From positions 62,001-126,000 of the IMG/VR virus record IMGVR_UViG_3300048121_001678: a DNA stretch of 64,000 nucleotides. One strand, given 5' to 3'. A program made the translations under genes and the position numbers. The notes beneath the pieces were generated by a model that searched no databases, was not told the origin of the DNA, and saw only the letters and a list, made by a program, of their open reading frames with translations. Shown in pieces: positions 2,762 to 44,600 of the stretch (position 1 is its first letter; the number at the start of each line of letters is the position of its first letter).

Positions 2762-3342
2762 TATTTACCTATTTTCCAATACATACGACCTGATAACACT
2801 GGTTGTAAATCTTGATTCACACCCAACCCTAAACCGAACATATTTTTTTGTTTATTTTTATACATAAATTCACCACCTAAATAATTAAGTTGGTCTTTCT
2901 TTCCTTGGAGACCTATACCCCAATAAAACTCTCTCTTATTAAGATATATTTCTTTTGTTATAGTTGTTGTCGGTATTTTAATGTTCGACACAAAACTTCT
3001 ACTTGAAATACTATTCATTGTTATAGTATCATTTAAAACTAAAAAACCTAACGTATCTAATGTTAGGGTGTCCACATAACTATATTTTGAATAGTAATCA
3101 TTTAATATCATCATCGTATCCACATATGATGGTACTGTATCGTGTTCAACAACAACCTTTGTTCTCCATTTTGGTACATACTCTGTCTGTACAACCTCAA
3201 CAGTATCCCATTTAGTCTCTATAGTTACAATAACCTCTGGTTCTACCACAGGTTTTTTTCTACTACATTGACTTTGGAATAATAGTATCACCACCAAAAC
3301 GATGATTAATATTGATTGTATTGAACTTAGATATTTCTTCAT
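2761..3342 (-). CDS. membrane-anchored protein, possible spanin-like lysis protein
   Basis: N-terminal hydrophobic helix followed by a Cys (LLFQSQC); C-terminal beta-strand-like region; two genes from the amidase. Confidence 0.4.
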   Translation of the reverse strand: MKKYLSSIQSILIIVLVVILLFQSQCSRKKPVVEPEVIVTIETKWDTVEVVQTEYVPKWRTKVVVEHDTVPSYVDTMMILNDYYSKYSYVDTLTLDTLGFLVLNDTITMNSISSRSFVSNIKIPTTTITKEIYLNKREFYWGIGLQGKKDQLNYLGGEFMYKNKQKNMFGLGLGVNQDLQPVLSGRMYWKIGK

Positions 3343-3950
3343 TACTCTTCTGTAGAATCTATATTTTTAGTTTTCTTTCTTTGTGATAATACTTTCGCCC
3401 ATTTAGACTTAAACTGCTCATAGTAAGATGTTAATTTATTAATTAATTCTATTAAAGAATCATCTAATTTAATCATATCACCATTAACGTACACTCCGTT
3501 ATTTTCACCTATCGAATAGAAAAATTCTAAATCAAAGTCAATCACCTTACCACTCCATTCAACATTATTTGGATAGATGTGTAAAGTACCGAAGTCTGAT
3601 AAATCAGATACTTGTTCAACAAAATCATCCATAGTCTCTTGAAACGATGACTTCTCTTCTGTAGATAACTCTAATTCTTGTTTATCTTTACCATGTAATG
3701 TAACGATACCACCAGACACTCTATAAGATTCGCTCTTATCCTCTTTAGGTGTTGTTTCAATATCAATTTCATCTTCAATGTCGGCACCAATATTTATAGG
3801 TTCATCCGTCAAGTCGGTTACGACCTTTTCTTCTTGTTCATTGAGTAGACCCATTCTTTTTAGCGTCTCTCTCGATTCTTTTAAGTTTTCTTTACCTAAC
3901 ATCCTCTTAGATGCACTAAGTAAAGATTTCATTTCATCATACTGATTCAT
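3342..3950 (-). CDS. acidic hypothetical protein
   Basis: 202 aa ORF overlapping neighbours; YDEMKSLL and LLNEQ motifs. Confidence 0.65.
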   Translation of the reverse strand: MNQYDEMKSLLSASKRMLGKENLKESRETLKRMGLLNEQEEKVVTDLTDEPINIGADIEDEIDIETTPKEDKSESYRVSGGIVTLHGKDKQELELSTEEKSSFQETMDDFVEQVSDLSDFGTLHIYPNNVEWSGKVIDFDLEFFYSIGENNGVYVNGDMIKLDDSLIELINKLTSYYEQFKSKWAKVLSQRKKTKNIDSTEE

Positions 3951-16772: not shown

Positions 16773-17411
16773 TTATCTTTTTAATTGGCAGAATGATACA
16801 ATAATGTATCTCTGACCTGTTAATACGGGTAAACCCCCGTGACGATGAGTTATTTGACCTGGATGTACCGATATATAACCTTTTTCACCTTTGAGTGATG
16901 TTTTTTGGTTTGGAAAATACGTACCACCACCAGTAAAATCTTCAGTATTTAATGTAACCACAACAGTTATTTGACTCGCATCGTGGTGTAAACCTAAATG
17001 ATATTGTGCATATGGGTGGTATCTCGCAATAAAGTTTTCCGAATGTAAATTCACCCATTCAGGTTCTTCTAATTTAAATAAATGTGCTGACATAGGCCAC
17101 ACATACTCCTCCAGTATCGATTGGTAAGTATCATGTAATCCCAAGGTTTCTAATACCATATCAGTTGTTGGATAATTCTCATGTCTATCAACGGTCCAAC
17201 AGTTACAGGCCTCCGCTTCTTGAACTATATAATCACAAAATAAATCTGTGAAACAAGGAATGGTATAGATATTAGGTAACTCTTCCTGTACATATAAATC
17301 CCAATTACCTGTTAGTAATTCAGGTCGTAAAAACTTCTCTTTCCACCCATCAGGGTCAGTAAAATAAGTATATAACTCAGGGTGTATTTTATTGGTTTTA
17401 ATATCTTCCAT
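16773..17411 (-). CDS. 2OG-Fe(II) dioxygenase resembling the PLOD lysyl-hydroxylase domain
   Basis: HHDAS, GGGT.F, HPGQITHRHGGLPV..G.RYIIVSF; N-terminal HPELY..F.DP..WKEKF. Confidence 0.85.
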   Translation of the reverse strand: MEDIKTNKIHPELYTYFTDPDGWKEKFLRPELLTGNWDLYVQEELPNIYTIPCFTDLFCDYIVQEAEACNCWTVDRHENYPTTDMVLETLGLHDTYQSILEEYVWPMSAHLFKLEEPEWVNLHSENFIARYHPYAQYHLGLHHDASQITVVVTLNTEDFTGGGTYFPNQKTSLKGEKGYISVHPGQITHRHGGLPVLTGQRYIIVSFCQLKR

Positions 17412-27221: not shown

Positions 27222-30200
27222 TTAACAGCAGTTATTACATATTGTAGTTAAATTATATGTTATCGGATTATAAAGTGCCGGTATCACAACCGTATTGTCC
27301 TGAGCACATATTGTAATTGTTGTCGGTACATTTATTATTACACCACTTACCTGTCTCTCTAAACCACATAAAGTATCATCACATTCCGTATAGTAGTACT
27401 CAAAGGTCTGTGAATTACTAAACCCTGTAACCGTTAATTCATATTGTGAACAGAATAAAACTGACGGTGTAGAACTTGGTGTTGGCGTATAAGTTGAAGT
27501 TACAGATGGAGTAACTGTATTTGTAGGTGTAACAGAGGATGTAAGTGTTTGTGTTGGTGTCGGAGTCGATGTTGCATCCAATGATGAAGATGGTGTGACT
27601 GACGCTGTCGGTGTTGGTGTCGATGTTGGAGTCGCACCTGGTGTTGAAGTTACCGTCGGTGTCGCTGTTAATGTAGGTGTAACGGATGGTGTCGGCGTAT
27701 TAGATGACGTCACAGTTACCGTTTGTGTCGGAGTGATTGTGGATGTCGGAGTTGATGTAGGAGTTCCACCAGGTGTCTCTGATGGTGTCACAGTCTGTGT
27801 TACGGTAACAGTTGGCGTAAATGTTGGAGTGATACTTGATGTGATTGATGGAGTCACCGTTAAAGTAGGTGTTACCGATGCCGTTGTTGATGGTGTCAAT
27901 GTCGGAGTAACAGATGGTGTTGCCGATGCAGTTGGAGTAACTGTTGAAGTCTGTGTTGGTGTATTTGTCTGTGTAACATCCGGTGTTTCAGAAGGTGTAA
28001 CTGTTTGTGTAGGTGTTGAAGTTGGAGTCTCAGAAGCAGTAACCGTTGGAGTAACTGAACCTGTAGGTGTATTGGTATTTGTAACCGTTGGTGTTACCGA
28101 AGCAGTCGTAGATGGTGTAGGTGTAATAGATGCCGTTGGGGTAACTGACGATGTAGGAGTTATCGTTTGTGTCGGAGTATTAGATGGTGTTACCGTAACT
28201 GTTTGAGTCGGTGTATTAGTAGGTGTTGAACCTGGCGTTTCAGATGGTGTCACTGTTTGTGTCTGTGTAACCGTCGGAGTAATACTTGCCGTCAATGTTG
28301 GAGTTACTGACGCAGTTGGTGTAATAGTATTAGTAACCGTTGGAGTAACTGATGAAGTCACCGATGGTGTAGGAGTTACTGATGAGGTTGGTGTAACCGT
28401 AGATGTTGGAGTGACAGAAGATGTTGGGGTTACTGTTGACGTTTGAGTGACAGTCTGAGTTGGTGTAGATGTTGGTGTAACACCTGGTGTTTCAGAAGGA
28501 GTTACCGTTTGTGTTTGAGTAACTGTTGGAGTCACACTCGAAGTTAATGTTGGAGTTACTGAAGCAGTTGGAGTAACAGATGAAGTTACCGTAGCAGTTA
28601 CCGATGGTGTTGGCGTATTTGACGTTGTTGGTGTTATTGTCGCAGTTGGTGTCACGGTTGAAGTCTGAGTAACCGTTTGTGTCGGAGTATTAGTTGGGGT
28701 TACCCCTGGTGTTTCAGAAGGAGTGACAGTCAATGTCGGTGTCTGTGTTGGTGTTTCACTCGCAGTCACTGTAGGTGTTACAGATGCCGTTGGGGTAACT
28801 GTAGAAGTAATAGTAGCAGTAACCGATGGAGTCGGTGTAACTGATGATGTTGGTGTCACAGATGCAGTTGGGGTAACTGTTGAAGTCTGAGTAACTGTTT
28901 GTGTTGGGGTGTTTGTAGGTGTAGATACAGGAGTCGATGATGGTGTTACCGTTTGTGTTTGAGTTACTGTCGGAGTTACACTCGAGGTAATAGTTGGTGT
29001 TACTGATTCGGTCGGTGTAACTGATGCCGTCACAGTAGCAGTAACTGAAGGTGTTGGTGTATTTGATGTAGTTGGTGTAACTGAAGCTGTTGGTGTTACC
29101 GATGATGTTGGAGTTACTGAAGCCGTTTGTGTAACCGTTTGAGTTGGTGTATTAGTAGGTGTTGAACCTGGCGTTTCAGAAGGCGTTACTGTCTGTGTTT
29201 GAGTTATTGTCGGTGTGATAGTAGCCGTTAATGTCGGAGTCACTGACGCAGTTGGTGTTACTGTCGATGTTACCGTCGCAGTCACCGATGGTGTTGGAGT
29301 ATTTGACGTTGTTGGTGTAACTGAAGCTGTTGGTGTGATTGAAGCAGTCGGAGTGACAGAACTTGTAGGGGTATTAGTTGGTGTTGAGACTGGCGTCTCT
29401 GAAGGAGTAACTGTTTGTGTTTGAGTTACCGTTGGTGTGTTACTCGCGGTCAATGTTGGTGTAACCGACGCTGTCGGAGTTACCGTTGAAGTTATAGTCG
29501 CGGTTACAGATGGTGTCGGCGTATTAGAAGTTGTAGGAGTAACCGATGCCGTTGGAGTAACAGACGATGTTGGAGTAACAGACGCAGTTTGTGTTACCGT
29601 TTGAGTCGGTGTTGATGTTGGAGTTACCCCTGGTGTTTCAGAAGGAGTAACCGTTTGAGTCTGGGTTACCGTTGGTGTAATAGTCGCCGTAACCGTTGGC
29701 GTAATAGAAGCTGTCGGAGTAACTGATGATGTAACCGTCGCAGTAACTGATGGAGTTGGTGTGTTTGATGTAGTAGGTGTGACTGACGCAGTTGGAGTAA
29801 CAGATGCGGTTGGTGTAACAGAACTTGTTGGTGTATTAGTTGGTGTCGATATTGGAGTTTCAGAAGGAGTTACCGTCTGAGTTTGAGTTACGGTCGGTGT
29901 ATTACTTGCTGTCAATGTTGGCGTAACTGACGCAGTTGGTGTGACTGAAGCAGTATTTGTTGGAGTTACACTTGCCGTTGGCGTAACTGAAGATGTTGGG
30001 GTTACCGAAGCCGTTGGTGTATATGTTGGAGTGACTGACGGTGTTGGAGTGACCGATGCAGTTGGTGTAGGTGTTGGTGTCGGAGCAATGAAGATAACAT
30101 CAACAGGACATATACAAGCCGAAGTATCAACATTAGTAACACCCCAACTACTAATCACCTCACCTGGAGGAAGAATAGAGTTGAAGTTATACTCAACCTG

Positions 30201-33200
30201 ATGGTCACCTTGTGGCCATGTTCTTGTACCTGAATATGTAAATCCTGAACTACCAACCATAAACCCATCAACCTCATAATCACATAAGGACTCAGCAGGT
30301 ATGGTAAACCCAGTATCTTTCCAAAGATTCAATCTAATCTTATCACCCTGAACAACATAACCTGTTAAATATTGTGTCGTTTGAGAACATGTTGTAGATG
30401 GAGTAACTGTTTGAGTTGGTGTAATTGTTTGAGTTTGAGTGACTGTCGGAGTAACAGAAGCCGTAGGAGTAACAGAGGCAGTTGGAGTCACAGATGCGGT
30501 AACTGTTTGAGTAGGAGTAACAGACGCAGTTGGTGTAACCGATGATGTTGGAGTATTAGAAGGTGTTACCGTAACTGTTTGAGTCGGTGTATTAGTAGGT
30601 GTTGAACCTGGCGTTTCAGAAGCAGTTACAGTCTGAGTAGGAGTAAATGTCGGAGTTACGGTTGCCGTTACCGTTGGTGTAATACTTGCCGTTGGTGTTA
30701 CACTCGCAGTTATCGTTGCCGTTACTGACGGTGTCACTGTTTGAGTCGGAGTAACTGAAGCAGTTGGTGTAACCGATGAAGTTGGAGTAACTGAAGCAGT
30801 CACCGTTTGAGTTGGGGTGATTGATGCGGTTGGTGTCACACTCGCAGTTGGCGTAACTGATGAAGTAGGTGTATTTGTTTGTGTTACCTCAGGTGTTTCA
30901 GATGGAGTGACCGTTTGAGTAGGTGTATTAGTTGGCGTTTCACTTGCTGTCAATGTTGGAGTAACAGACGCAGTTGGTGTTACAGATGCCGTCACAGTAG
31001 CGGTAACCGAAGGTGTTGGAGTATTTGTTGGTGTTTCTGTCGGTGTTGGGGTAACTGAAGACGTTGGTGTTACTGATGATGTAGGAGTGACAGATGCCGT
31101 TACCGTCTGTGTTGGAGTGATAGTTGCCGTTTGAGTAACAGTTGAAGTCGGAGTATTAGTTGGCGTACTTACAGGTGTTGACGAAGCAGTAACTGTTTGT
31201 GTAGGGGTAAATGTCGGTGTTACAGTTGCAGTGACTGTTGGTGTGATTGAAGCGGTTGGCGTAACCGACGCAGTTACTGTCGCAGTAACAGAAGGTGTTG
31301 GAGTATTAGACGCAGTTACTGTTTGTGTTGGTGTTACAGAAGCCGTTGGGGTGTTAGTTGGTGTGGTAGTATTAGATGGTGTGACAGTATTTGTTGGAGT
31401 TAGACTAGCGGTCGGAGTAACTGACGATGTTGGTGTATTTGTTGGAGTTGATACAGGTGTTTCTGAAGGCGTTACCGTTTGTGTTTGAGTAACTGTTGGT
31501 GTCACACTAGCAGTCACTGTTGGAGTAATAGACGCAGTTGGTGTAACCGATGATGTAACAGTCGCCGTTACTGTTTGCGTAGGAGTATTTGTTGGTGTTT
31601 CAGTCGGTGTTGGAGTTACCGATGATGTAGGAGTAACTGAAGCCGTCGGTGTTACTGAAGCAGTAACTGTTTGAGTCGGTGTCAATGTCGCAGTTGGAGT
31701 AACTGATGATGTTGGTGTATTTGTCGGAGTAACGGCTGGTGTTGATGAAGCTGTTACGGTCTGTGTCGGAGTAAATGTTGGAGTCACAGTTGCAGTAACA
31801 GTTGGCGTGATACTCGCAGTTGGTGTGTATGTTGGTGTTACAGTCGCAGTAATAGATGGCGTTACAGAAGCAGTTGGCGTAACTGATGCCGTTGGAGTGA
31901 CCGAAGATGTTGGGGTCACAGAAGCAGTCACAGTTTGAGTTGGTGTAACTGTATTAGTAGGTGTTACACTTGCAGTCGGAGTTACAGATGCAGTTGGAGT
32001 ATTTGTAGGAGTAACCGCAGCCGTTTGAGTCGGAGTATGTGTCGGTGTTACTGTAGATGTTGCAGTTACAGATGGTGTCGGAGTAACAGAAGATGTCGGA
32101 GTTACCGACGCAGTTGGAGTATTAGTAGGTGTTACACTTGCAGTCGGAGTTACAGATGCAGTTGGCGTATTTGTTGGTGTCACCGTATTCGATGGAGTAA
32201 CAGTATTTGTTGGAGTAACGGATGCCGTTGGCGTAACCGAAGCTGTCGGTGTATTTGTTGGTGTAACTTGAGCAGTCTGAGTAGGAGTATTAGTTGGTGT
32301 GACGGTAGACGTCGCAGTCACCGATGGTGTAGGAGTCACAGATGAAGTAGGGGTTACCGAAGCGGTTGGAGTGTTCGTAGGGGTAACACTTGCAGTTGGT
32401 GTTACCGATGATGTCGGAGTATTCGTAGGAGTAACACTCGAAGTTGGAGTAACTGAAGCAGTTGGCGTATTTGTTGGAGTTACAGTGTTTGACGGAGTAA
32501 CTGTATTTGTTGGAGTTACACTCGCAGTCGGAGTAACCGATGCTGTAGGTGTATTAGTTGGAGTTACCGCGGCCGTTTGTGATGGTGTCACAGATGCAGT
32601 TGGAGTATATGTTGGGGTTACTGTGGCCGTTCTTGTCGGAGTATTAGACGGAGTGACGGTATTTGTCGGTGTATTGGTTGGTGTAACTGTATTAGATGGG
32701 GTAACCGACGATGTTGGTGTATTTGTTGGAGTAACGGTATTAGACGGTGTAACAGTATTAGTAGGTGTATTCGTAGGCGTCTCACTCGCTGTCGGTGTTA
32801 TAGTTCTAGTTGGTGTATTAGAAGGCGTAACTGTATTCGTAGGAGTATAAGTAGGAGTAACAGTATTCGATGGCGTAACCGATGCAGTAACAGTTGCAGT
32901 CGGTGTTATAGTTCGAGTAGGTGTATTTGTTGGAGTAACGGTATTAGACGGTGTAACCGTATTCGTAGGGGTAAAGGTCGGAGTAACAGTATTCGAAGGC
33001 GTGACTGAAGCAGTTACCGTTGCCGTTGGAGTTATTGTCCTCGTTGGGGTATTTGTTGGGGTAGCGGTGTTAGAAGGGGTGACTGACGGAGTAGCCGTAG
33101 TTGAAGGGGTTAATGTAGCAGTTTTAGTCTGAGTAATAGTTGCGGTAATAGTAGGGGTCACCGAAGCAGTAGGTGTATATGTTGGAGTTACAGTATTTGT

Positions 33201-34721
33201 AGGTGTATTTGTTGGCGTAACAGTATTAGATGGTGTAACTGACGCAGTAGGTGTGACTGTCCTAGTTGGTGTATTAGAAGGCGTAACCGTATTCGTAGGA
33301 GTATAAGTAGGAGTGACAGTATTTGTTGGAGTGACCGTAGGTGTCGGCGTAGCGGTTCTAGTCGGCGTCCTTGTAGGACTTACCGAAATACTTGGAGTGA
33401 CTGAAGGAGTAACCGTCGCAGTTCTAGTCGGAGTCCTCGTAGGACTTACAGAAATACTTGGTGTAACCGTAGCGGTTCTCGTAGGTGTTCTGGTTGGACT
33501 TACAGAAATCGAAGGTGTAACCGTCGGAGTTGCCGGTGGAGTTCGAGATGGAGTAACACTCGAAGTTGGTGTTACAGCTGGAGTTCGAGACGGGGTCTTC
33601 GTCGGAGGAGGAGTACTCGTTGGAGTCCTTGTTGGAGTTCTTGTTGGAGTTCTTGTTGGGGTTGGTGGTATCGGGGTAGTTGACGGAGTTGGAGTTGGAG
33701 TTACAGGTTCATCAGAACAACATTCTTCACATGTCTCGTATACACTAGCCGAACAGTCAACAACCGCTTCACAATCAGGTACAACACCCTCAATAAAATA
33801 ACAACATCCGTCACAACTATCTAATTTAACAACTTGACCAGCATTCGGACATGGATTTAAATTAGTGACTTTAACAAACTGAGCATGATATTGATAATTA
33901 CACTCACATTCGGGTTCTATAAAGTCACACCTAACTAAATAAAGACAACACGGTTCACCTAAGTTAGTCACATCATAACCCTGATTAGGTTCCATACCAG
34001 GTTCATATGGTGTTGGCTCATTAGTATTACCCAAACCTAAACACTCATCACAACCATTTGGAAAAAGAGTATTAACTGAACCTATAAATGATATGTTAGC
34101 GGTAGGACAGTTTTCGGCACAACTTCCAACAGCGATTACTTCCCAACAAACATTTATATTATCAGAAAATGCGTCACCGACACTAAAATTATAAACATTT
34201 TGAATACAAGCGACTGATGTTTGCGTTAGACAGTCCCGAATACATGCATATCCAATATTATGAACAATATATCCGTTTAAAACATAATAACTTGGACCAC
34301 TAAGTGTTATGTTATATAAAGATTCTTCAGAGTATACAATTTCCTTACTAACAACAGGTTCATGAATGATGTCACCATCAACCATTTTAACCATATCATA
34401 TTCACCATCAACAACTAAATCTATTGTAGATATAAACTGATATCTATCATCATTTTTATGATACGCTAAGACATTTTCGTCTATAACACCTAATCCATTA
34501 ATTTGAAGATAGTTACCCTCATCATTATAGATGTCTGTAACCTCAGGTGATTGTATATTATCAACATTAAGAGTTAGTGATTCGATTTCACGGAAGTCAA
34601 TTCCTGCGATAATTTCAGGTATATCAAAAGAGTATACACTGTCACCTAATTGAACATCTTCAATGTTCTTTACGGCACCATTTGAAAGTAATACTTTTTG
34701 TCCTAATTTATAACCAGCCAT
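27222..34721 (-). CDS. giant mucin-like protein: N-terminal Hint domain, Cys-rich region, ~2000 aa Thr/Ser/Pro/Val repeats
   Basis: 2499 aa uninterrupted ORF; Hint ends YNITL....[11 protein letters not shown]; repeat tract interrupted once by a ~100 aa globular module; Cys-rich C-terminus. Confidence 0.85.
27480..33700 (-). repeat. degenerate coding tandem repeat, TP(T/S)x(S/T)V hexapeptide with higher-order units
   Basis: recurrent gttggNgtNac units on the plus strand; interrupted at about 30085-30390. Confidence 0.9.
34257..34721 (-). other. Hint (intein-like) domain, residues 1-155
   Basis: [27 protein letters not shown] matches block A without Cys1; terminal His-Asn. Confidence 0.75.
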
Positions 34722-34767
34722 TTATCGATGTAATTAACCTATAAATAATAGGTTGAACCCTTTTATA

Positions 34768-37128
34768 CTAAGATTCCTTCCTTAAACTTCCATCATAATG
34801 GTCAAACCTATCATGTTCAGTTGGTGATAGTAATAAAATACCTGGTTTAATATTACCTATTATCGTTTCTTGAAACATATATGACATCCAAGTCTGCTCA
34901 TAAGGTCGAGCCCATTTCTCAGTTAAGAACATTTTTTCATTACCATATTTTGACACCACCTGTGGCCAATTACAATAATAAATTTCACCATGTGCAAATG
35001 GTATACCTTGGAAGCTGTCTATTTTTGTGATTTTAGTTTTTGGTGCATTAGGGTCTAATCCTTGGATAGGTAATAATGGTTTTTCAGGCCAATGCTGTTC
35101 TCTAATTTTTTGAGGTACGTTATACCAAGCCCATTGAACTGTATTGTCACCGTAAAACTCAGTATATGATAACTTTAAAAAGTCAAAGTTGTTTTTCTTA
35201 GCAATTTTAAGCGAATTTCTATATAGGTTTTTAACATATCTGTTAAAACCATTTTTATCTACCTCACCCTCTTTAGGATAAAAGAACATATCATCCTCAA
35301 AAAAGAAATAATAATCATATCCATTTTCTTCAGCGTGTTCTGCAACCCATTGTCTACCACCACAAATACCTAAATTATCTTTTTTAACGTGTTCAATATT
35401 ATATTCTTTACAAAGTTCAACATATTCTTCAGTTGTCGATAAATCCGTAGAGTTATCTAACATCACCCATTGTGGTTTAGTTACAAAGTCCTCATCATAT
35501 TGTTTCATAGATTGAATCAATGTCTTTACCTGATTTGGACTATTAAATGTAATCACATAAAGTGCAACATTATCAATATCTAAATCATTAGTAATAACAT
35601 CAAACTTTAACTCATTAAGTGGTTTATGTGTATCATTTTTAACGTCTTCAAAAAACTTACTAATTAATCCATTACCCTCAATTGGGAAATACTGATAGTT
35701 TTCAGGATATCTATACAGTAAAATAGTGAAAAGAGACTCTTCAGTACCCATATAGCCCGAATTAAGAGTGTTTTTCATTAAATTGTAGTACTCATTGTTA
35801 AAATCTGCAATAGATTCTACAGGACCACCAAAGAAACCACCACGACAAACTTTATTTACTTTAGTACTTGTCATTTCACAAATCTTATCATAATCGAATC
35901 CATGAATTTCTGTCTCCGTTTCATAAGGGAATGCGATGTAACTAATTTTGTCTATTTTTGTTAATTTATCCAATACTTTATCGTGTGTAAAGTATCCAGA
36001 ATGTACGGTATTGGTAATCCCCGCATCTAACCAAAATAAATGTGTTGAATTAAATTGGTCCATTATTTTAGCATCATGTAAAAGATATGGTTTAGACATA
36101 ACCAGTGGATTATACATGTCAAGTTTAGCCTGTGTTGACTCACCTAACCAACCAACCTGATTTATCCAATCAGGATTATTTCTAATAGTTTGTATTGAGT
36201 TGTAAAACTCACCTTTAAACCATTCTTGGTCACGTGTTATAAACATAGTATTATCTCTACTACGTCTTTCAAAAACAAACTCCTCTAATTCTGCATCACC
36301 AAATACTATAAGGTTATAAGGTATTTCCAAAAATTGAGAAAACTTCTCTAAATAATGTTCAAAACTTCTTGACCATCCCTCGGCTAATTCATCTCTTTTA
36401 ATGTTCCATAACCCAGTAACTATTGTAATTCCACTTTCATTCATATCTTCATATATCTCGTTATATATTTCTTTGATGATACCTACTATGTCTTCAGATT
36501 CTTTACCATAAACGTATCCGTTATCATCAAAAGTTTTTATTATTTGTTGTTTTTCTTCATCAGATAGACTTGACCACTCTAATCTAACTACTTTAGGTCT
36601 ATACTTTGAAAAATCAATCTGTTTAAATATTTCATAATCATGTCCTTCGGCATCAATTTTTATAACGTCAAATTCAACAATATTATGTTTTTCTAATAAC
36701 CTTTCAAAAGTAATACACGGTACCTTTACTCTAAGTCCATATTTTTCAACAGTATCTCTATCACCATCACTACCCAATCCATTTTTTGGTGGATATATTG
36801 CACTCATACCCATAAAACAAGTATGCATCTTACCTTCTTGTATCGCTGAAGGACTGATAGTAATCATTTCCACATCACCATTATATGTTGAGATTGCAGA
36901 GTTTTCATACTTATTTTCATCCCCAAAGTTTTTCTTTAATTTTTCAAAATAGTATGGAATTGGTTCCACATATAAACCTTTAAAATCATAAGCATTTGAA
37001 TACCCACTTAACTCATCAAATGTTTGACCATCCATAGCCCCAATATTAATGGTAAATAATCTATGACCTTTCTTACCTAAATGATGTAATATATCATTAA
37101 AATAATCTGTATTTTTTAACTGTATCAT
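34768..37128 (-). CDS. fusion of FkbM-family methyltransferase, HtrL/YibB-like domain and GT2-like glycosyltransferase
   Basis: IGAMDG, VEP, KIDAEGHD (FkbM); TIVTGLW, YNPLVMSK, FWLDAG (HtrL); DNST, NLGICGGR, FFEDD (GT-A); start at 37128 by TAATG overlap. Confidence 0.8.
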   Translation of the reverse strand: MIQLKNTDYFNDILHHLGKKGHRLFTINIGAMDGQTFDELSGYSNAYDFKGLYVEPIPYYFEKLKKNFGDENKYENSAISTYNGDVEMITISPSAIQEGKMHTCFMGMSAIYPPKNGLGSDGDRDTVEKYGLRVKVPCITFERLLEKHNIVEFDVIKIDAEGHDYEIFKQIDFSKYRPKVVRLEWSSLSDEEKQQIIKTFDDNGYVYGKESEDIVGIIKEIYNEIYEDMNESGITIVTGLWNIKRDELAEGWSRSFEHYLEKFSQFLEIPYNLIVFGDAELEEFVFERRSRDNTMFITRDQEWFKGEFYNSIQTIRNNPDWINQVGWLGESTQAKLDMYNPLVMSKPYLLHDAKIMDQFNSTHLFWLDAGITNTVHSGYFTHDKVLDKLTKIDKISYIAFPYETETEIHGFDYDKICEMTSTKVNKVCRGGFFGGPVESIADFNNEYYNLMKNTLNSGYMGTEESLFTILLYRYPENYQYFPIEGNGLISKFFEDVKNDTHKPLNELKFDVITNDLDIDNVALYVITFNSPNQVKTLIQSMKQYDEDFVTKPQWVMLDNSTDLSTTEEYVELCKEYNIEHVKKDNLGICGGRQWVAEHAEENGYDYYFFFEDDMFFYPKEGEVDKNGFNRYVKNLYRNSLKIAKKNNFDFLKLSYTEFYGDNTVQWAWYNVPQKIREQHWPEKPLLPIQGLDPNAPKTKITKIDSFQGIPFAHGEIYYCNWPQVVSKYGNEKMFLTEKWARPYEQTWMSYMFQETIIGNIKPGILLLSPTEHDRFDHYDGSLRKES

Positions 37129-37658
37129 TATTCTATTACTATAAAGTTCTTTTGCCAACCTTTATATTCCGTCCAAGTCTTACCCAAAATCTCTGCGGTT
37201 TCAACTGCAAAATTATATTCATCTTCTCTGTGTGTGTCATCCATAATAATTGGAACTGATGTATTCAATCTATCCCAGTATTTTGCAATATTATTTCTAG
37301 TCTTAACTTGGTCTAAATTTGGTGGTCCATCAACAATAATTAACGAATATTCTTCAGGTAAACTATTGAATACAACTTCAGAATTATACCATCCGTCCAC
37401 AATATCCGCTAAGATGTAATTAGCCTTTGGTGCCAAACGTGTAAATCTTTCTTGGTGTTCAATAGCATATACGTTATGATACCTACTCAGCTCCATAGTA
37501 CCACTACCACTACCAAACTCAATGATTGTCTCACCCTTTTCAATATTTTCATCAATCCAAGAATAACACTCCATAGATATTGCCCAACCATCAAGGTTAT
37601 TCATATTAACATCCAATTCCTTTAACTTAGGAAATATATAATTTAAATCTGTATTCAT
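37128..37658 (-). CDS. class I SAM-dependent methyltransferase
   Basis: IIEFGSGSGT, IIVDGPP, IMDDT.R. Confidence 0.75.
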   Translation of the reverse strand: MNTDLNYIFPKLKELDVNMNNLDGWAISMECYSWIDENIEKGETIIEFGSGSGTMELSRYHNVYAIEHQERFTRLAPKANYILADIVDGWYNSEVVFNSLPEEYSLIIVDGPPNLDQVKTRNNIAKYWDRLNTSVPIIMDDTHREDEYNFAVETAEILGKTWTEYKGWQKNFIVIE

Positions 37659-38533
37659 AATTGCTCAAAAAACTTATAAAAACTTATTTTACCATCCAAA
37701 AATTCAGGAGTAACAGACTTATCAGTTAAGTTTGAATCGTCGTGATACCACGTATTAAATTTGAATGAGTGATAGTTTTCAGGTTTATCATACACCATTG
37801 TAGACATCATTGCTTCATGATTAAGAAGAAATTCTTTACTTAAACACATCTGAGAGTATTCCTCAAATCTTTGAAATAAATTAGGTAACTTACTCACATG
37901 ACCACCTATTATACCACCAATAGAAAGGGAGTCATACATGTGGTCTTTTTCTAAAACTTCATTCAACTTTCTATGGTCATGAAAAAATAATGTGTTTCTA
38001 ATATCAATTAATTTATCACCAAGCCAGTTGTTAATTTTAGGTATTGTATTTTCATTAAAAATACCATCATAGGTGTATCTATATTTGTTCATTGATAATC
38101 CTGTGATTTTATCCGCATTTGAATTATACCTTCTCGGATATAAACCAATATGTGATAAACCACAGTCAAACCAATATAAGTACTCTAAACCTTCTACCAT
38201 TTCGTCTTCCATCAAAGCAATTTTAGCCCATCCAACTTCTAAATAAAATTTAAACAATTCAGGGTTTTTTTCTTTGACTTCAATCATCTTTTTACTATGT
38301 CTTATATCTTGTAATTCTTTGACTTTAATAGTCACATTAGTTACTCCATTTTCATCTAAAATTTCTTGTAGTGATTCCGCAGTATTAGACCCAGTATAAC
38401 AAATAATTTGAACATTCATCTGAGATAATTGTACTAATGAATGAGTATATCTATCCCATCTTGCCTGTACTTTATGTCCAAAGAATGGGAAGTCTCCAAT
38501 TCCGAAATATAAAAAAGTTACAATTTTTGTCAT
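37655..38533 (-). CDS. HtrL/WlaTC-like glycan-modifying protein
   Basis: KIVTFLY, YWFDCGL, GGIIGG; paralogous pattern to the middle domain of 34768..37128. Confidence 0.6.
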   Translation of the reverse strand: MTKIVTFLYFGIGDFPFFGHKVQARWDRYTHSLVQLSQMNVQIICYTGSNTAESLQEILDENGVTNVTIKVKELQDIRHSKKMIEVKEKNPELFKFYLEVGWAKIALMEDEMVEGLEYLYWFDCGLSHIGLYPRRYNSNADKITGLSMNKYRYTYDGIFNENTIPKINNWLGDKLIDIRNTLFFHDHRKLNEVLEKDHMYDSLSIGGIIGGHVSKLPNLFQRFEEYSQMCLSKEFLLNHEAMMSTMVYDKPENYHSFKFNTWYHDDSNLTDKSVTPEFLDGKISFYKFFEQL

Positions 38534-40101
38534 TTTCTAAAGTAATAGTCTTCTAATAATAAACAGTCCATTTTAGTCTTATCATAGACCTTCAACGCAT
38601 CCGTGTATCTTGATAGGATAGGTTTTCCATTTACATTAAATGAAGTGTTTAATAATACACCTATACCTGATTTTTTCTCAAACTCCGTCAGTAGATTATA
38701 TAGCCAAGGATTTTGCTCTTCAGTTACAGTTTGAACACGAGCAGTACCATCAACGTGAGTTATAGAAACTAATCTCTCTCTCCATTCTTCTTTAACCGTT
38801 GGACAGAAACCCATCCATCTACTCTCACCCTCAAAGTCAAAGTATTTAGACACATCCTCTAATTTACATACAGGTGCAAATGGTCTATACCATTCTCTAT
38901 TCTTAACCTTAGCATTCAATATGTCTTTCATATCAGGATAAGCAGGATTGCAAATAATACTACGATTACCCAACGCTCTTGGTCCATGTTCTGATGTACC
39001 TCTAACAACACCAACAATTTTACCATCATTTAGGTCGTCTGTTAATCTTTCCAAATCTAACTCACTACCTCTACGTTCTTCAACGTGGGACATTAATGTG
39101 TGTTTATCTAAGATAGGTATACCAGCATATGTCACATCAACCGCCTTTTCAGGTTTCATATGATTCAAAATCATACCCGTAGCAATACCACAATCATTAG
39201 GGTTAGGTGGAACAAAAACAGGACGGTCTAATACTTGTTGTAACTTGGTATTAAGTAGAATATTAAGAGCACATCCTCCAACTGTTATCAACGGTATATT
39301 AGGATATTCATCTAAGAACGGCTGAGCCATCTCCATAAACACATTTTCAAACGCAGTCTGTGATGTTTTAGCAACATCCCATGAAGTTTGACCTGTTAAT
39401 CTATTCTGAATATCAAATACCAATCCTGTTTGTTCACCTAATTCACCCAAAAACTCAATATAGTTCAAACCGTCAGGTTTTCTTCTATAGTAGTTTTCAA
39501 AGTGTGGTAACCATTCATTATTCACGTTACCATAAGAACAAAGTCCCATGATTTTACCTGAATAAACTAAGTTACCAATATTTAATGCCGGTTCCTTACG
39601 AATATCCCCCATATAGTCACCAAATGACATATAAGGAAATCCTAAATCTAAATTGTATTTATCTAATAATGTAATTTCTGTTCTACCAGACGCTAAATAC
39701 ACGTTATAAAAACCATCATTACCACCACCATCAAAAGATATTATTAATGCGTCATCATAATCTGTCTGATACAGACCACATGCGGCATGACTAAGGTGAT
39801 GTAATTGATTTACGTGTTTTTTAGCAGGTATAAGTTGTTCATAGTGTACTTTGGTACCTCCTTCCAATGTATCCGAATTTAAGTAGTAACACGTATCGTA
39901 TTCACTGATACCAAATTCATCTTCAATGTATTTTAATATTTCTTTTAAAAGATAAGGTCTTGTGTAAGAAACGAGGTACTGTGCGTACCCCGCATTCTTT
40001 TCACTTAAAAATCTTTCAACTTCAATTACCGTAATTAATTCTCCATTCTCTTCAACCGCAACCGCAGCATTGTGAGAACCGTAAAATGATATATTTGCCA
40101 T
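38530..40101 (-). CDS. O-carbamoyltransferase (NodU/CmcH family)
   Basis: SHNAA, EVER, HHLSHA, DGGG, GKIMGL, GGCALN, D.G, GPRALGNRSI, RPFAP, HVDGTARVQT, NTSFN. Confidence 0.93.
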   Translation of the reverse strand: MANISFYGSHNAAVAVEENGELITVIEVERFLSEKNAGYAQYLVSYTRPYLLKEILKYIEDEFGISEYDTCYYLNSDTLEGGTKVHYEQLIPAKKHVNQLHHLSHAACGLYQTDYDDALIISFDGGGNDGFYNVYLASGRTEITLLDKYNLDLGFPYMSFGDYMGDIRKEPALNIGNLVYSGKIMGLCSYGNVNNEWLPHFENYYRRKPDGLNYIEFLGELGEQTGLVFDIQNRLTGQTSWDVAKTSQTAFENVFMEMAQPFLDEYPNIPLITVGGCALNILLNTKLQQVLDRPVFVPPNPNDCGIATGMILNHMKPEKAVDVTYAGIPILDKHTLMSHVEERRGSELDLERLTDDLNDGKIVGVVRGTSEHGPRALGNRSIICNPAYPDMKDILNAKVKNREWYRPFAPVCKLEDVSKYFDFEGESRWMGFCPTVKEEWRERLVSITHVDGTARVQTVTEEQNPWLYNLLTEFEKKSGIGVLLNTSFNVNGKPILSRYTDALKVYDKTKMDCLLLEDYYFRK

Positions 40102-40102
40102 G

Positions 40103-41371
40103 TTATAGTGTTCCTGTTAATCTGTCACACCAACCTTTAGATGACGAATAAGGCCATACAACCCAATAAGCTGGTTTTTCAGTTATGTTAAATTGTCTCC
40201 AAACTTTACAATAACCATCTGGGTCATTCATCATTCGGTCTATTTCTGCCCTATCAGCATCCTTTCTGTGAATAGTGTTATCTTCGCTATCGTGGAAAGC
40301 AACTACCCAATATTCATAATCTTTTTCAGGTACTTGCTCATAACCCACATCAATACAATGTTTATAGATAGTCGCAAAACTTTCTAACCATTCTTCTTTA
40401 CTCTCAAAAGTATCGATACCTGGGTTAGGTGGGTAATGTTTATCTAACGTATATTGTTGTACTCCTCTTACACCAAACTTTAATCCTGAATACTCTTCGT
40501 ACTCCTCCAAAGTTCTATTAGGACCAAAACCATACTTACCATCATGACCTTCTTGAGATTCACCATCCATACCAAATAGCTTTCTATTAGTTAAGTGAGA
40601 ATGACTGTTTTTGTTACCCCATTCTTTGTCATCATCCCATTGCTTAGTTCTACCCTTACGAGTATATTCATGCCAAATTAAGACTTTATGTGGGTGGAAC
40701 ATATCATAACCCCATGTGAATGCTCTTGCAGCTATTGAAATCTCCTCACCGTGGAAGTAATACTCAGGATTGTGTTGTACCTCTTCACTGAACTCACCTA
40801 ATGTGAAACAGAAGTGAGCAGAGTAGAATCTTGCGGGTACTGGTGTGTCTAACTCTCTCCAATTTGGAATTGTCTCAGGTAAAAAGAATACCGCACCTTC
40901 AGGAATAAATCGGTCAAATGCCATTCTCCATGGCTCTTGTACTCTAGCACCTGGGTCATTATCAGGGTCAAATGATGAAACATATCCTGTCAATAATGGT
41001 TTTGGTATCCCCATACCTTGGAGTTGTTTTACCATTTTAATCATCTCAACATCCCAATCTTTTGCAAATCTCATATGTGAGTCAATCTGTAAAGTATACA
41101 TCTCTCCTCCATATAATTGTTGAATCGAGTGTCTTGCCCAACACGCACCTTTAGAGTCCTCATAAGGGATGTCTAAAATACGAAAACGTTCGTCATCTCT
41201 ATATTTATCTAAATTGTCAAATCCATCTTCAGAATGATATTGTCTACAAATACCAAATACTAAGTTTTGTGGTCTTTTCGCATTCATTATCATATCCTCA
41301 ATTGTGTTAACTAACTCAGGGTCTCGATATGACGCCACTTGTATGAAAATCTTTTGTGCTCTTCTTGCCAT
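40103..41371 (-). CDS. GT60-like GlcNAc transferase (GlcNAc family)
   Basis: IFIQVASYRDPEL, KGACWAR, LQIDSHMRF..DWD, FHGEEI...ARAFTWGYD.FHP....WHEY. Confidence 0.85.
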   Translation of the reverse strand: MARRAQKIFIQVASYRDPELVNTIEDMIMNAKRPQNLVFGICRQYHSEDGFDNLDKYRDDERFRILDIPYEDSKGACWARHSIQQLYGGEMYTLQIDSHMRFAKDWDVEMIKMVKQLQGMGIPKPLLTGYVSSFDPDNDPGARVQEPWRMAFDRFIPEGAVFFLPETIPNWRELDTPVPARFYSAHFCFTLGEFSEEVQHNPEYYFHGEEISIAARAFTWGYDMFHPHKVLIWHEYTRKGRTKQWDDDKEWGNKNSHSHLTNRKLFGMDGESQEGHDGKYGFGPNRTLEEYEEYSGLKFGVRGVQQYTLDKHYPPNPGIDTFESKEEWLESFATIYKHCIDVGYEQVPEKDYEYWVVAFHDSEDNTIHRKDADRAEIDRMMNDPDGYCKVWRQFNITEKPAYWVVWPYSSSKGWCDRLTGTL

Positions 41372-41651: not shown

Positions 41652-44600
41652 CTATTTTGTAATATACTCCACTTCAATCTTATCAATATCTTTTCTTTCT
41701 GCTTGTATAAAGTAATAACAATCAATTTTATTACTAAATAAGTTACCGTTACCAATATGAACTACGTTGTTCTCAATTTTTTTAACATATAAATTTTGAT
41801 GTGAACCTATAGATGTTAATTGAACAGTAATCGTATCGGGGTCTACTAAATCTAACCAATATTCAGGTAATTCAATCTCCTTATCATTAAGTTGTCTACC
41901 TCTAATGTAAACACCGTGTTCTGGTCCCTCCAAGTTACCATGCTTCAGTCTCATTCCCTGTTCTTTCTTCTCGTTATTTGGGTGAGGAATATCAAAGGCC
42001 TTTGACGTGGCAGTTAAGTTACCTTGACCATCCACTCTAAATACAGGTGCCTGATTTGAATCATATCCCGTAGCTATCGCAACTGTTGGAGCCGAACTTA
42101 ATAGTGATAACACGTCACTATATACATCATCTGCCTCGATAAATACTCTAGGTACATTTAACGGTGTCGAAATAGATTTAAATATGTTTAGACTTTCGTT
42201 TGCACTTGACGCAAAATCAAGATTATTACTACCCTGAGTTATAGTACGAAGTGAAGATAATGTACCATCTGTAGAATAAATGTTAGTATTACCCGCAGAA
42301 GTTATATATCCCGCGTCGTTATTAAATCCACTATTACTAATATTACCCTTAGTAAGTTTCTTCTGATTATTTGAGGAATCTACAACCACAAAGAAATCAC
42401 CGTCCCCATTGGATGTCGATGTCGTTAATTCAGATAAGTCAACATTAACATTACTACCATCAACATCAATAAGAGTACCAGCACCTACATTTAAGGATAC
42501 TGAACCACCCAAGGAAGCTGAACCACCACCTGTTAATCCATTACCACCAGTAACAGTGATAGATGAGTTCGCTAACGAACTATTAGGTACATTGGATAAT
42601 CCTAATGCAATCGTACCATTTGTTGTGATTGGCGAACCTGAATCAACATCGATACCGTCTGAACCTGAAATAGCCACAGAAGTAACTGTACCCTGACTAT
42701 TAGTATATGGTAATGCGGCTATTAATGCTTTTTTAGCATTATTGTCAGAATCACTGACAAGTATATAATCAGTATCCTCAATATCATTTGGATATGCACC
42801 CGCGGCAAGAATAATGTTATCAGTACCTAAGTAATCAACATCCACAGTAATCGAACCAGATGTCCCCCCACCCGATAAACCTGTACCCGCAGTTACATTA
42901 GTTATATCACCAACGGTTATAGAACCCCCTAATGATGTTGAAGTACCATTAATGGTTATACTTGAATTTGCCAGTGAACTATTAGGTACGTTGGATAATC
43001 CTAAGGCAATTGTGCCTGAACTTGTGATTGGCGAACCTGAATCTATATCTATACCATCTGAACCTGAAATTGCAACTGATGTTACTGTACCCGACGTATT
43101 TGTATATGGTAAATCAGAAACTAAACCTTTCTTAACATTATTATCACTAGCATCATGGTAAACTATAGTATCGCTTAATCCAATACCTGTACCTTCTAAA
43201 TTAGTCGCAGAATCAATGAAATTATCGGTTCCTGTATAATCTAAAGAGACCGTCACTGAACCAGATGCACCACCACCTGATAAACCTGTACCTGCGGTTA
43301 TATTAGTAATGTCACCAACTGTCACAGTACCACCTAATGATATGGAACTACCATTAATAGTAATACTACTATTAACGAGTTGTGAGTTAGTAATTTGACC
43401 GGCACTAACATCAGAAATAATATCATCACCAGCTATTTGACCACCTAATGAAATATCACTTCCCGCAATATCAATAGAAGAATTAGTTAATGAACTATTA
43501 GGTACGTTTGATAATCCTAATGTTATTGTTCCATTTGTTGTGATTGGCGAACCTGAATCAACATCGATACCATCTGTACCCGAAATTGCAACAGATGTAA
43601 CTGTACCATCATTTGTTGTAAACCCAGCATCGTTATTAAATCCACTTAATTTAATATTAGCTTTAGTAAGTTTTCTTTGTACATTTGAAGAATCTATTAC
43701 CGCGAAGAAATCACCATCACCATCAGATACTGATGTTGCCAATTCTGAAAGGTCCACAGATATTGTATCTGCAGCGACATCAATAAGTGAACCCGCACCA
43801 ACATTAAGTGTAACTGCTCCTGAAGTACCCCCACCTGTTAAACCGTTTCCTGCACCTACTGAGGTAATATCACCCTGATTATTACTGAATGGTAAATCAG
43901 AAACTAATCCGAAATTAACCAACTGTGAACCATCACTAAATAATATATGTGAACTAAGTCCGATTGATTGTGAACTTGCATCAGTTGCAGATAAAATAAT
44001 ATTATCAACACCCGTATAATCAACATTAAGGGTAACCGCACCTGATGTACCACCACCAGTTAAACCATTTCCAGCACTCACACCTGTTATGTCTCCAACA
44101 TTAATTGAACCACCTAAAGATACTGATGTACCATTAATAGTTATAGATGAGTTTGATAATGAACTATTAGGTATACTATTAAGGTTAGCACCACTACCAC
44201 TGAACGAACCAATCACTTGACCTTGGAATGTCGCATCTTTACTCGAAGAGTCAAAGGTCACTGCAGTTCCTGTTTCACCATTGGTTGATAATATTAAATT
44301 ATTATTAGAGAATATTCTGAAATTGTTGGACCCATCATTGTCAAATGCCCCGACATTGGTCATTCTAAGACCGTCCCCATTCTGTGAAATTCTTAAAACG
44401 CTATTAGCATAAACAGTATCCGCAGTTATTGAAGTAAGACCCGCAATAGAAGATGCGGTCCCTCCAAGTGATACAGAAGTAGAACCAATAGTAATACTTG
44501 AATTGTCTAAAGATGCGTTTGGAATAGTCGAGAAAGAAAGTGAACCTGAACCGTTAGTTAATAATACAGTATTCGCTGACCCATCAGATGTTGGGAAAGA

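Follow-up and report, generated by a model that had tools for sequence, protein, structure and literature searches.

A Hint domain without an N-extein caps a giant Thr/Pro-rich protein of a marine jumbo phage and may remove itself by asparagine cyclisation

An uncultured marine jumbo phage encodes a giant Thr/Pro-rich protein that opens with a Hint domain, and, judging from the residues that this domain has kept and lost, we lean towards the view that it is a single-turnover Asn-cyclisation domain (an asparagine peptide lyase) that removes itself. The DNA analysed (the window, 64,000 nucleotides) is part of a 297 kb record that is ~99% complete, and almost all of its genes lie on the minus strand at a GC content of ~32–38%. 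The positions of the relevant features are collected in Table 1.

Table 1. The Hint-capped ORF, its parts and the neighbouring genes discussed in the text (positions are those of the window)
Feature	Position	Strand	Remarks
Giant ORF	27222-34721	(-)	2,499 aa (2499 codons), Thr/Pro-rich
Hint domain, residues 1-155	34257..34721	(-)	~17 kDa; M1-A2 alone precede Hint position 1 (G3)
Putative scissile junction Asn155/Ile156	34254..34259	(-)	Codons AAT ATT; cleavage proposed
Cys-rich beta domain, residues 156-340	33702..34256	(-)	185 aa, directly after the Hint; predicted structure
Remainder of the 2499-aa ORF	27222..33701	(-)	Thr/Pro/Ser/Val-rich repeats and Cys-containing domains
Start codon ATG with in-frame TAA directly 5'	34719..34724	(-)	Sequence
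Upstream gene	34768..37158	(-)	FkbM methyltransferase, HtrL_YibB and weak TAGT glycosyltransferase match, fused
Carbamoyltransferase	38530-40101	(-)	
PF11397 'GlcNAc' glycosyltransferase	40103-41371	(-)	
2OG-Fe(II) oxygenase	16773-17411	(-)	17 kb downstream of the Hint-capped gene

Several aspects of the giant ORF are apparent from its layout. First, an earlier reading of this DNA from its letters (the sequence-only reading) had placed the Hint domain at the start of the ORF, and its coordinates, strand and residues are correct as given; the terminal sequence GYIVHN is followed past the junction by IGYACIRDC, with no cysteine in the Hint and a Cys-rich composition in the 185 residues that come after it. 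Secondly, no N-extein can be encoded, as had also been claimed, because the in-frame TAA abuts the ATG and leaves only Met-Ala ahead of Hint position 1. The gene upstream stops 46 nt before the ATG in another frame, and an N-extein acquired through fusion to that gene, read-through or recoding was rejected on the grounds of this frame difference and the abutting TAA. Thirdly, two long Thr/Pro/Ser/Val repeat regions flank a small Cys-containing domain (~aa 1440–1560), and another Cys-containing domain forms the C-terminal end of the protein. We note that the repeats (27222–33700) have a GC content of 45%, compared to ~32% in their flanks, with a strong positive GC skew on the plus strand, and that long antisense ORFs occur within them on that strand (e.g. 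27595–28206, 32299–32850 and 33313–33801); these seem to arise incidentally from the ACN/CCN-rich repeats and not to be genes. The Cys-rich domain that adjoins the Hint is predicted with a pLDDT of 92 and a pTM of 0.86, and contains 17 invariant positions, 9 of which are cysteines; neither the PDB nor the AlphaFold DB clusters contain a match to its fold, and the model suggests that this fold may be new.

The proposal that the protein begins directly with a Hint-like fold is borne out. An AlphaFold2 model of residues 1–340, built from an alignment of 29 sequences, has a mean pLDDT of 84, and all 50 of its 50 best Foldseek matches in the PDB are the Hint domains of inteins, bacterial intein-like (BIL) domains or Hedgehog proteins, each with a probability of 1.0. 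Superposition on these domains with VIA-align gives Z scores of 14–17.7 and an rmsd of 1.7–2.0 Å over ~130 residues, and pairs residues 3 to 155 of the model with the first to the last residue of the intein (Mtu RecA, Prp8, PI-SceI and Ssp DnaE). The predicted structure thus confirms, far beyond chance, that residues 1–155 fold as a Hint domain. Single-sequence matches to Pfam and NCBIfam profiles are all below threshold and are consistent in register: PF14890 (Intein_splicing) has an E value of 5e-4 and 20 bits against a gathering score of 35.8, with profile position 155 of 155 falling on Asn155, and there are sub-threshold matches to PF05203 at residues 7–30 and to TIGR01443 (intein_Cterm) at residues 136–155. 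A single-sequence search of solved structures with the Hint as query gave no match, and a search with the family profile gave weak matches only, in the right register. In a phmmer search over 1.8 billion representatives 44 proteins were found, ~35 of them with E values of 1e-10 to 1e-4; all nine of those that were scanned (9/9) are multi-Hint proteins, carrying PT-HINT, Hint_2, Intein_splicing and Hom_end_hint domains above threshold. Residues 3–155 are therefore a member of the Hint superfamily by sequence homology and by fold. With MAFFT, Gly3 sits under the Cys of the CFAKGS motif of a Cys1-bearing relative, and from this alignment together with the VIA-align ranges it follows that Hint position 1 is Gly3 and the last position Asn155. 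The 297-kb genome contains no other Hint, and no part of it matches the PT-HINT profile; a split intein was ruled out, as the whole fold lies within one polypeptide.

With the register fixed, the catalytic positions can be read off in turn. Cys1 is replaced, as the sequence-only reading had stated, although its domain boundary, drawn between MAG and YKLG, is one residue off and belongs between MA and GYKLG; position 1 is Gly in all 29 distinct sequences, and the Cys, Ser or Thr of class 1 is absent. The place of the block B TxxH motif aligns with V79-I-D-E82/N83 (within the GVIDENV of the earlier reading, which rightly reported the motif as missing), and neither Thr nor His occurs there in any clade. 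Block F (21 residues) was aligned with VFDLTVPGLHNFVANNIIVHN of the Npu DnaB intein, and in this alignment the F:4 Asp is replaced by Asn137 and the F:13 His by Ser144; across the family F:4 is Asn, Ser or Arg, and F:13 (residue 144) is S, N, F or D and never His. The block F Cys of the class 3 WCT motif is likewise missing, with zero Cys in the Hint of every family member. The claim of an intact terminal His-Asn holds throughout the family, since H154-N155 of block G, at the end of the last beta-strand, is invariant (29/29 distinct sequences). The +1 residue, correctly called as Ile in the window, is V in 20 sequences, I in 6, F in 2 and D in 1, and never C, S or T. One to three residues precede Hint position 1 in the family, so that the domain is not an insertion between two extein halves. 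Because of the Gly1, the lone upstream Met-Ala, the lack of any Cys and of block B Thr/His, and the Ile/Val at +1, the N-S acyl shift, transesterification and ligation are impossible; class 2 and class 3 intein chemistry was considered separately and is ruled out by the Cys-free domain and the non-nucleophilic +1. The view that the domain cannot splice therefore extends from the window to the whole family, and to judge from these residues splicing by the class 1, 2 and 3 routes is excluded, with only the third step, Asn cyclisation, still possible.

Relatives of the Hint number 41 sequences, 29 of them distinct, which form three to four sub-clades sharing 26–35% identity and were drawn from IMG/VR, a metagenome collection and two protein databases. 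Their sources are viral contigs (184 kb at the longest) and metagenomes of marine or estuarine origin, among them those of TARA. No relative was found in isolated phage genomes (by megablast, or by tblastn of the region and of residues 1–340), and there are no prophage or cellular copies among 185,579 prokaryotic species genomes. Complete members begin M-x(-x)-G-[YF]-K-x-G-Q-x-V, and a stop codon lies only a few codons before this start; the Hint ends in His-Asn at residue 154, 155 or 158 in every member, and all members with enough sequence are proteins of >2000 aa containing 25–35% Thr and 12–17% Pro. Two members show breaks in their reading frames. In L010 (3044–6788) the 212-aa stretch with the Hint and the Cys-rich part is not in frame with the Thr/Pro-rich part, an apparent +1 shift falling near base 3645. 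In L009 (7700–9600) frameshifts run through several genes, which probably points to errors in a long-read assembly.

The pattern of conservation within the family is uneven. There are 22 invariant positions among the 29 distinct sequences (M1, G3, K5, G7, Q8, V10, I20, E21, G26, P35, I74, N75, L77, F96, V111, E121, L148, G150, Y151, V153, H154 and N155), and the last six of these lie within the last 8 residues of the Hint. Conservation then breaks off at the junction, with positions +2 to +5 varying, and block B, F:4 and F:13 likewise vary freely from member to member. In L044 and L045, two independent metagenome contigs, the 185-residue Cys-rich domain is lacking altogether and the Hint is unchanged through the Asn. 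From base 3001 these contigs read HN followed by FALLPGH, with Phe at +1, and continue with small CC...ECY...C modules and PTNT repeats. Such an asymmetry, in which the Hint is conserved and its downstream partner is swapped exactly at the Asn, resembles what would be expected of a processing junction. The reverse situation was not encountered, as there are no Hint-less orthologs of the Cys-rich domain in IMG/VR and the Hint is present at all six loci found (6/6). The Nei-Gojobori dN/dS of the Hint is 0.13–0.21 within clades, similar to or below that of the adjacent Cys-rich domain, at a dS of ~1–1.7 where synonymous sites are near saturation.

In the self-removal that we favour, the giant protein would be made with the ~17-kDa Hint as an N-terminal cap. 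The cap would fold first and be present while the Cys-rich domain and the Thr/Pro-rich shaft fold, are modified or are assembled; His154-Asn155 would cyclise to a succinimide and the Asn155–Ile156 bond would be broken, with the cap detaching once and without a protease, such that the mature protein would begin I/V-G-Y-x-C. The cap could thereby act as a folding aid, a solubility aid or an assembly timer for a long, low-complexity and probably glycosylated fibre protein. The cleavage, its timing and the role of the cap are what we infer here. The earlier suggestion of a chaperoning or timing role is purely conjectural, and that of a domain competent for C-terminal cleavage alone is partly supported, in that it is chemically legitimate and fits the conservation pattern.

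Chemically, Asn cyclisation can proceed apart from the N-terminal steps, and it underlies the C-terminal cleavage of type A BILs (PMC4031507, PMC7765530); asparagine peptide lyases cleave only themselves, right after the Asn (PMC3207474). The main conserved helper is His G:6, with His F:13 being dispensable in some inteins, and in the Pho RadA intein cyclisation of the Asn is held back by Asp F:4 (PMC4031507). With His154 left as helper and no F:4 brake, the domain would most likely remove itself once and expose I/V156.

Several considerations count against self-cleavage. Uncatalysed Asn cyclisation is slow (PMC4031507), and His F:13, often an aid to it, is missing. The GY[IV]VHN strand could be conserved for structure alone. 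In several inteins a preceding branched intermediate speeds up the C-terminal step, and such an intermediate cannot form in this Hint. A Phe at +1 would create a bacterial N-degron after cleavage in the cytoplasm (the N-end rule), and the +1 Phe of L044 and L045 is thus a possible N-degron. We also note that in the AlphaFold2 model the Cys-rich domain starts at +2 with no linker after the Hint, and that the two might stay packed together even if cut.

The main rival explanation, which we think rather unlikely, is that the Hint is catalytically dead and stays on as a structural N-terminal module, for instance one docking to the particle or to a partner, with its His-Asn kept only to close the last beta-strand. 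The N-terminal domains of phage fibres are commonly attachment modules, most of the catalytic helpers (block B Thr/His, F:4 Asp and F:13 His) are gone, and no linker precedes the next domain, all of which would suit such a role. Purifying selection spans the whole domain and not block G alone, and non-catalytic residues (G26, N75, L77, F96 and E121) are invariant as well; however, a purely structural requirement sits poorly with a His-Asn pair that has 0 substitutions in 29 distinct sequences from clades with 26–35% identity to each other, while the other catalytic residues have drifted or been lost. Nor does it account readily for conservation that ends exactly at the Asn and a downstream partner that can be swapped, and attachment leaves unexplained why a Hint with Gly1 occupies the extreme N-terminus in every member.

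A further explanation, which we regard as improbable, accepts that the Hint cleaves but takes the released Hint to be the product, or has its C-terminal succinimide captured by a nucleophile of another protein in a conjugation or transfer device comparable to Tetrahymena BUBL. Tetrahymena BIL2, which mediates enzyme-free conjugation (PMC8616854), ranks with the top structural matches (Z 17.6 with VIA-align, E ~1e-6 with Foldseek), and the BUBL reaction nonetheless uses an N-terminal thioester that is impossible here without Cys1 and an N-extein. Phages encode many stand-alone Hint-only proteins (159–308 aa), and the Hint is conserved as well as its cargo, but no precedent for capture of a succinimide by a foreign nucleophile was found in the literature, and no candidate partner was found. 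Least probable of all is that a mobile intein or BIL lost its N-extein by 5' truncation or rearrangement and left a tolerated, non-functional remnant: the N-terminal catalytic residues are indeed absent and the nearest relatives are Cys1-bearing Hints, but the M-x-G-[YF]-K start, the length and the junction are kept in three to four clades at a dS of at least 1, the Cys-rich domain has no ortholog in IMG/VR that is free of the Hint, and the low within-clade dN/dS indicates purifying selection and hence not a decaying domain.

The genes around the Hint-capped ORF were compared between the window and the scanned relatives L005, L007, L009 and L010, which come from three sub-clades. In the window and in all four relatives the gene directly upstream of the Hint-capped one encodes an HtrL_YibB protein, a PF11397 gene lies upstream in the window, L005, L007 and L009, and the carbamoyltransferase and FkbM methyltransferase are common to the window and L009. 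PF11397 is the family of the Skp1 hydroxyproline GlcNAc-transferase, and the neighbourhood, taken with the 2OG-Fe(II) oxygenase of the window, suggests that phage enzymes hydroxylate and/or O-glycosylate the Thr/Pro repeats. The sequence-only reading had called the protein a virion mucin, and we use both terms with reservation. 'Mucin' reflects only the Thr/Pro composition and the conserved glycosyltransferase neighbourhood, and 'virion' only the neighbouring very large ORFs with their PHROG tail or structural matches and SprB/PKD repeats, so that each is best read as putative. These ORFs (1021, 1018, 624, 1108, 1884 and 979 aa) follow each other at 41652–61872 on the minus strand, and include a Gordonia/Vibrio phage minor-tail-protein domain, SprB repeats, DUF642 and a recurring phrog_15511 module; together they probably constitute a fibre/tail module. 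The best matches to the primase, tail-protein and glycosyltransferase genes are to jumbo phages of Flavobacterium, Microcystis and Xanthomonas, at 31–48% identity.

Outside the family, the nearest relatives are tandem Hints, each with CF.AGT at the start and VHN followed by Lys-Gly-Gly at the end. This combination of Cys1, His-Asn and a non-nucleophilic +1 is, as a set of motifs, the signature of type A BILs, in which cleavage occurs at His-Asn without a +1 nucleophile (PMC4031507, PMC7765530). Most simply, the cap would descend from a type-A-BIL-like Hint that shed its N-terminal flank and its N-terminal chemistry. In the ESM Atlas, phage clusters with Hints on their own or in tandem are numerous. 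Three to six tandem Hints of the form CF.AGT...VHN-K-G-G are found in P0012, P0021, P0028, P0049 and others, and among the metagenomic tandem-Hint proteins some carry Tim44-like domains and one is 4119 aa long. Such type-A-BIL-like arrays seem to be frequent and to have received little study.

Hint domains are familiar as agents of splicing in inteins, of cleavage at their N-terminal junction in Hedgehog and PT-HINT, and of dual cleavage in BILs. Neither the fold nor the chemistry discussed here is therefore new; what is new is the architecture, a Hint at the extreme N-terminus with no extein, Gly1, no Cys and His-Asn only, always on a giant Thr/Pro-rich phage protein. A natural extein-less N-terminal Hint that keeps the Asn-cyclisation step alone was found neither in the literature searched nor in isolated phage genomes. 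The giant Thr/Pro-rich protein and its Skp1-type GlcNAc-transferase neighbourhood make up a widespread and seemingly undescribed marine phage module. If the cleavage is real, it would be a new use of the Hint fold in virus assembly, would reveal which residues suffice for Asn cyclisation (the block B His, F:4 Asp and F:13 His all being absent), and would provide a compact, Cys-free, natural self-cleaving tag. More tentatively, and at somewhat less than even chances, we speculate that these domains form a natural and dedicated 'C-cleavage-only' class of Hints, extein-less, Cys-free and at the extreme N-terminus, serving as protease-independent self-removing chaperones or timers for the giant glycosylated fibre proteins of marine jumbo phages, and representing the first Hint lineage with Asn-lyase cleavage as its sole chemistry. 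Such a class would offer a ready minimal scaffold for removing tags tracelessly, with neither the block B His nor the F:13 His required.

Among known systems, the type A BILs, reportedly described by Amitai in 2003 and Dassa in 2004, share the most with the cap. The type A BIL of C. thermocellum (PDB 2LWY) has the same Hint fold (Z 16.9, rmsd 1.8 Å), type A BILs share the C-terminal His-Asn and the non-nucleophilic +1, and like the cap they are housed in hypervariable, repeat-rich, non-essential proteins and not in conserved enzymes; they differ in having Cys1, an N-terminal flank and an N-terminal thioester, where the cap has Gly1, Met-Ala only, no Cys and no block B Thr/His. Engineered C-terminal-cleavage inteins (e.g. 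the Cys1Ala mini-inteins used for tag removal) have their N-terminal chemistry disabled and free their cargo by Asn cyclisation. The principle is set out in PMC4031507, and the logic, with the Hint N-terminal to its cargo, is the same as that proposed here; these are, however, laboratory constructs that keep the block B His and usually the F:13 His, whereas the cap is natural and has neither. With the class 1–3 inteins (MEROPS N9–N11) the cap has in common the fold, the layout of blocks A, F and G, and the terminal His-Asn chemistry of the third splicing step (PMC3207474). Unlike them it has no nucleophile at position 1 or +1, no block F Cys and no homing endonuclease, and there is no conserved host protein around it and nothing to ligate. 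The Hint of the Hedgehog Hog domain again has the same fold (Z 17.7 to Drosophila Hh-C with VIA-align), and Hedgehog and PT-HINT (pretoxin) domains also release an adjacent domain once by autoproteolysis, although they do so at the N-terminal junction through Cys1, the opposite polarity to that of the cap. The peptidase S74 chaperones are likewise self-removing auxiliary domains on long, low-complexity phage fibres (PMC7824862), as the cap is proposed to be. They are C-terminal and trimeric, of unrelated fold, and act by Ser-Lys hydrolysis, in contrast to the N-terminal position and proposed Asn-lyase activity of the cap, which by analogy would do at the N-terminus, as an Asn lyase, what the S74 chaperone of tail spikes and fibres does at the C-terminus.
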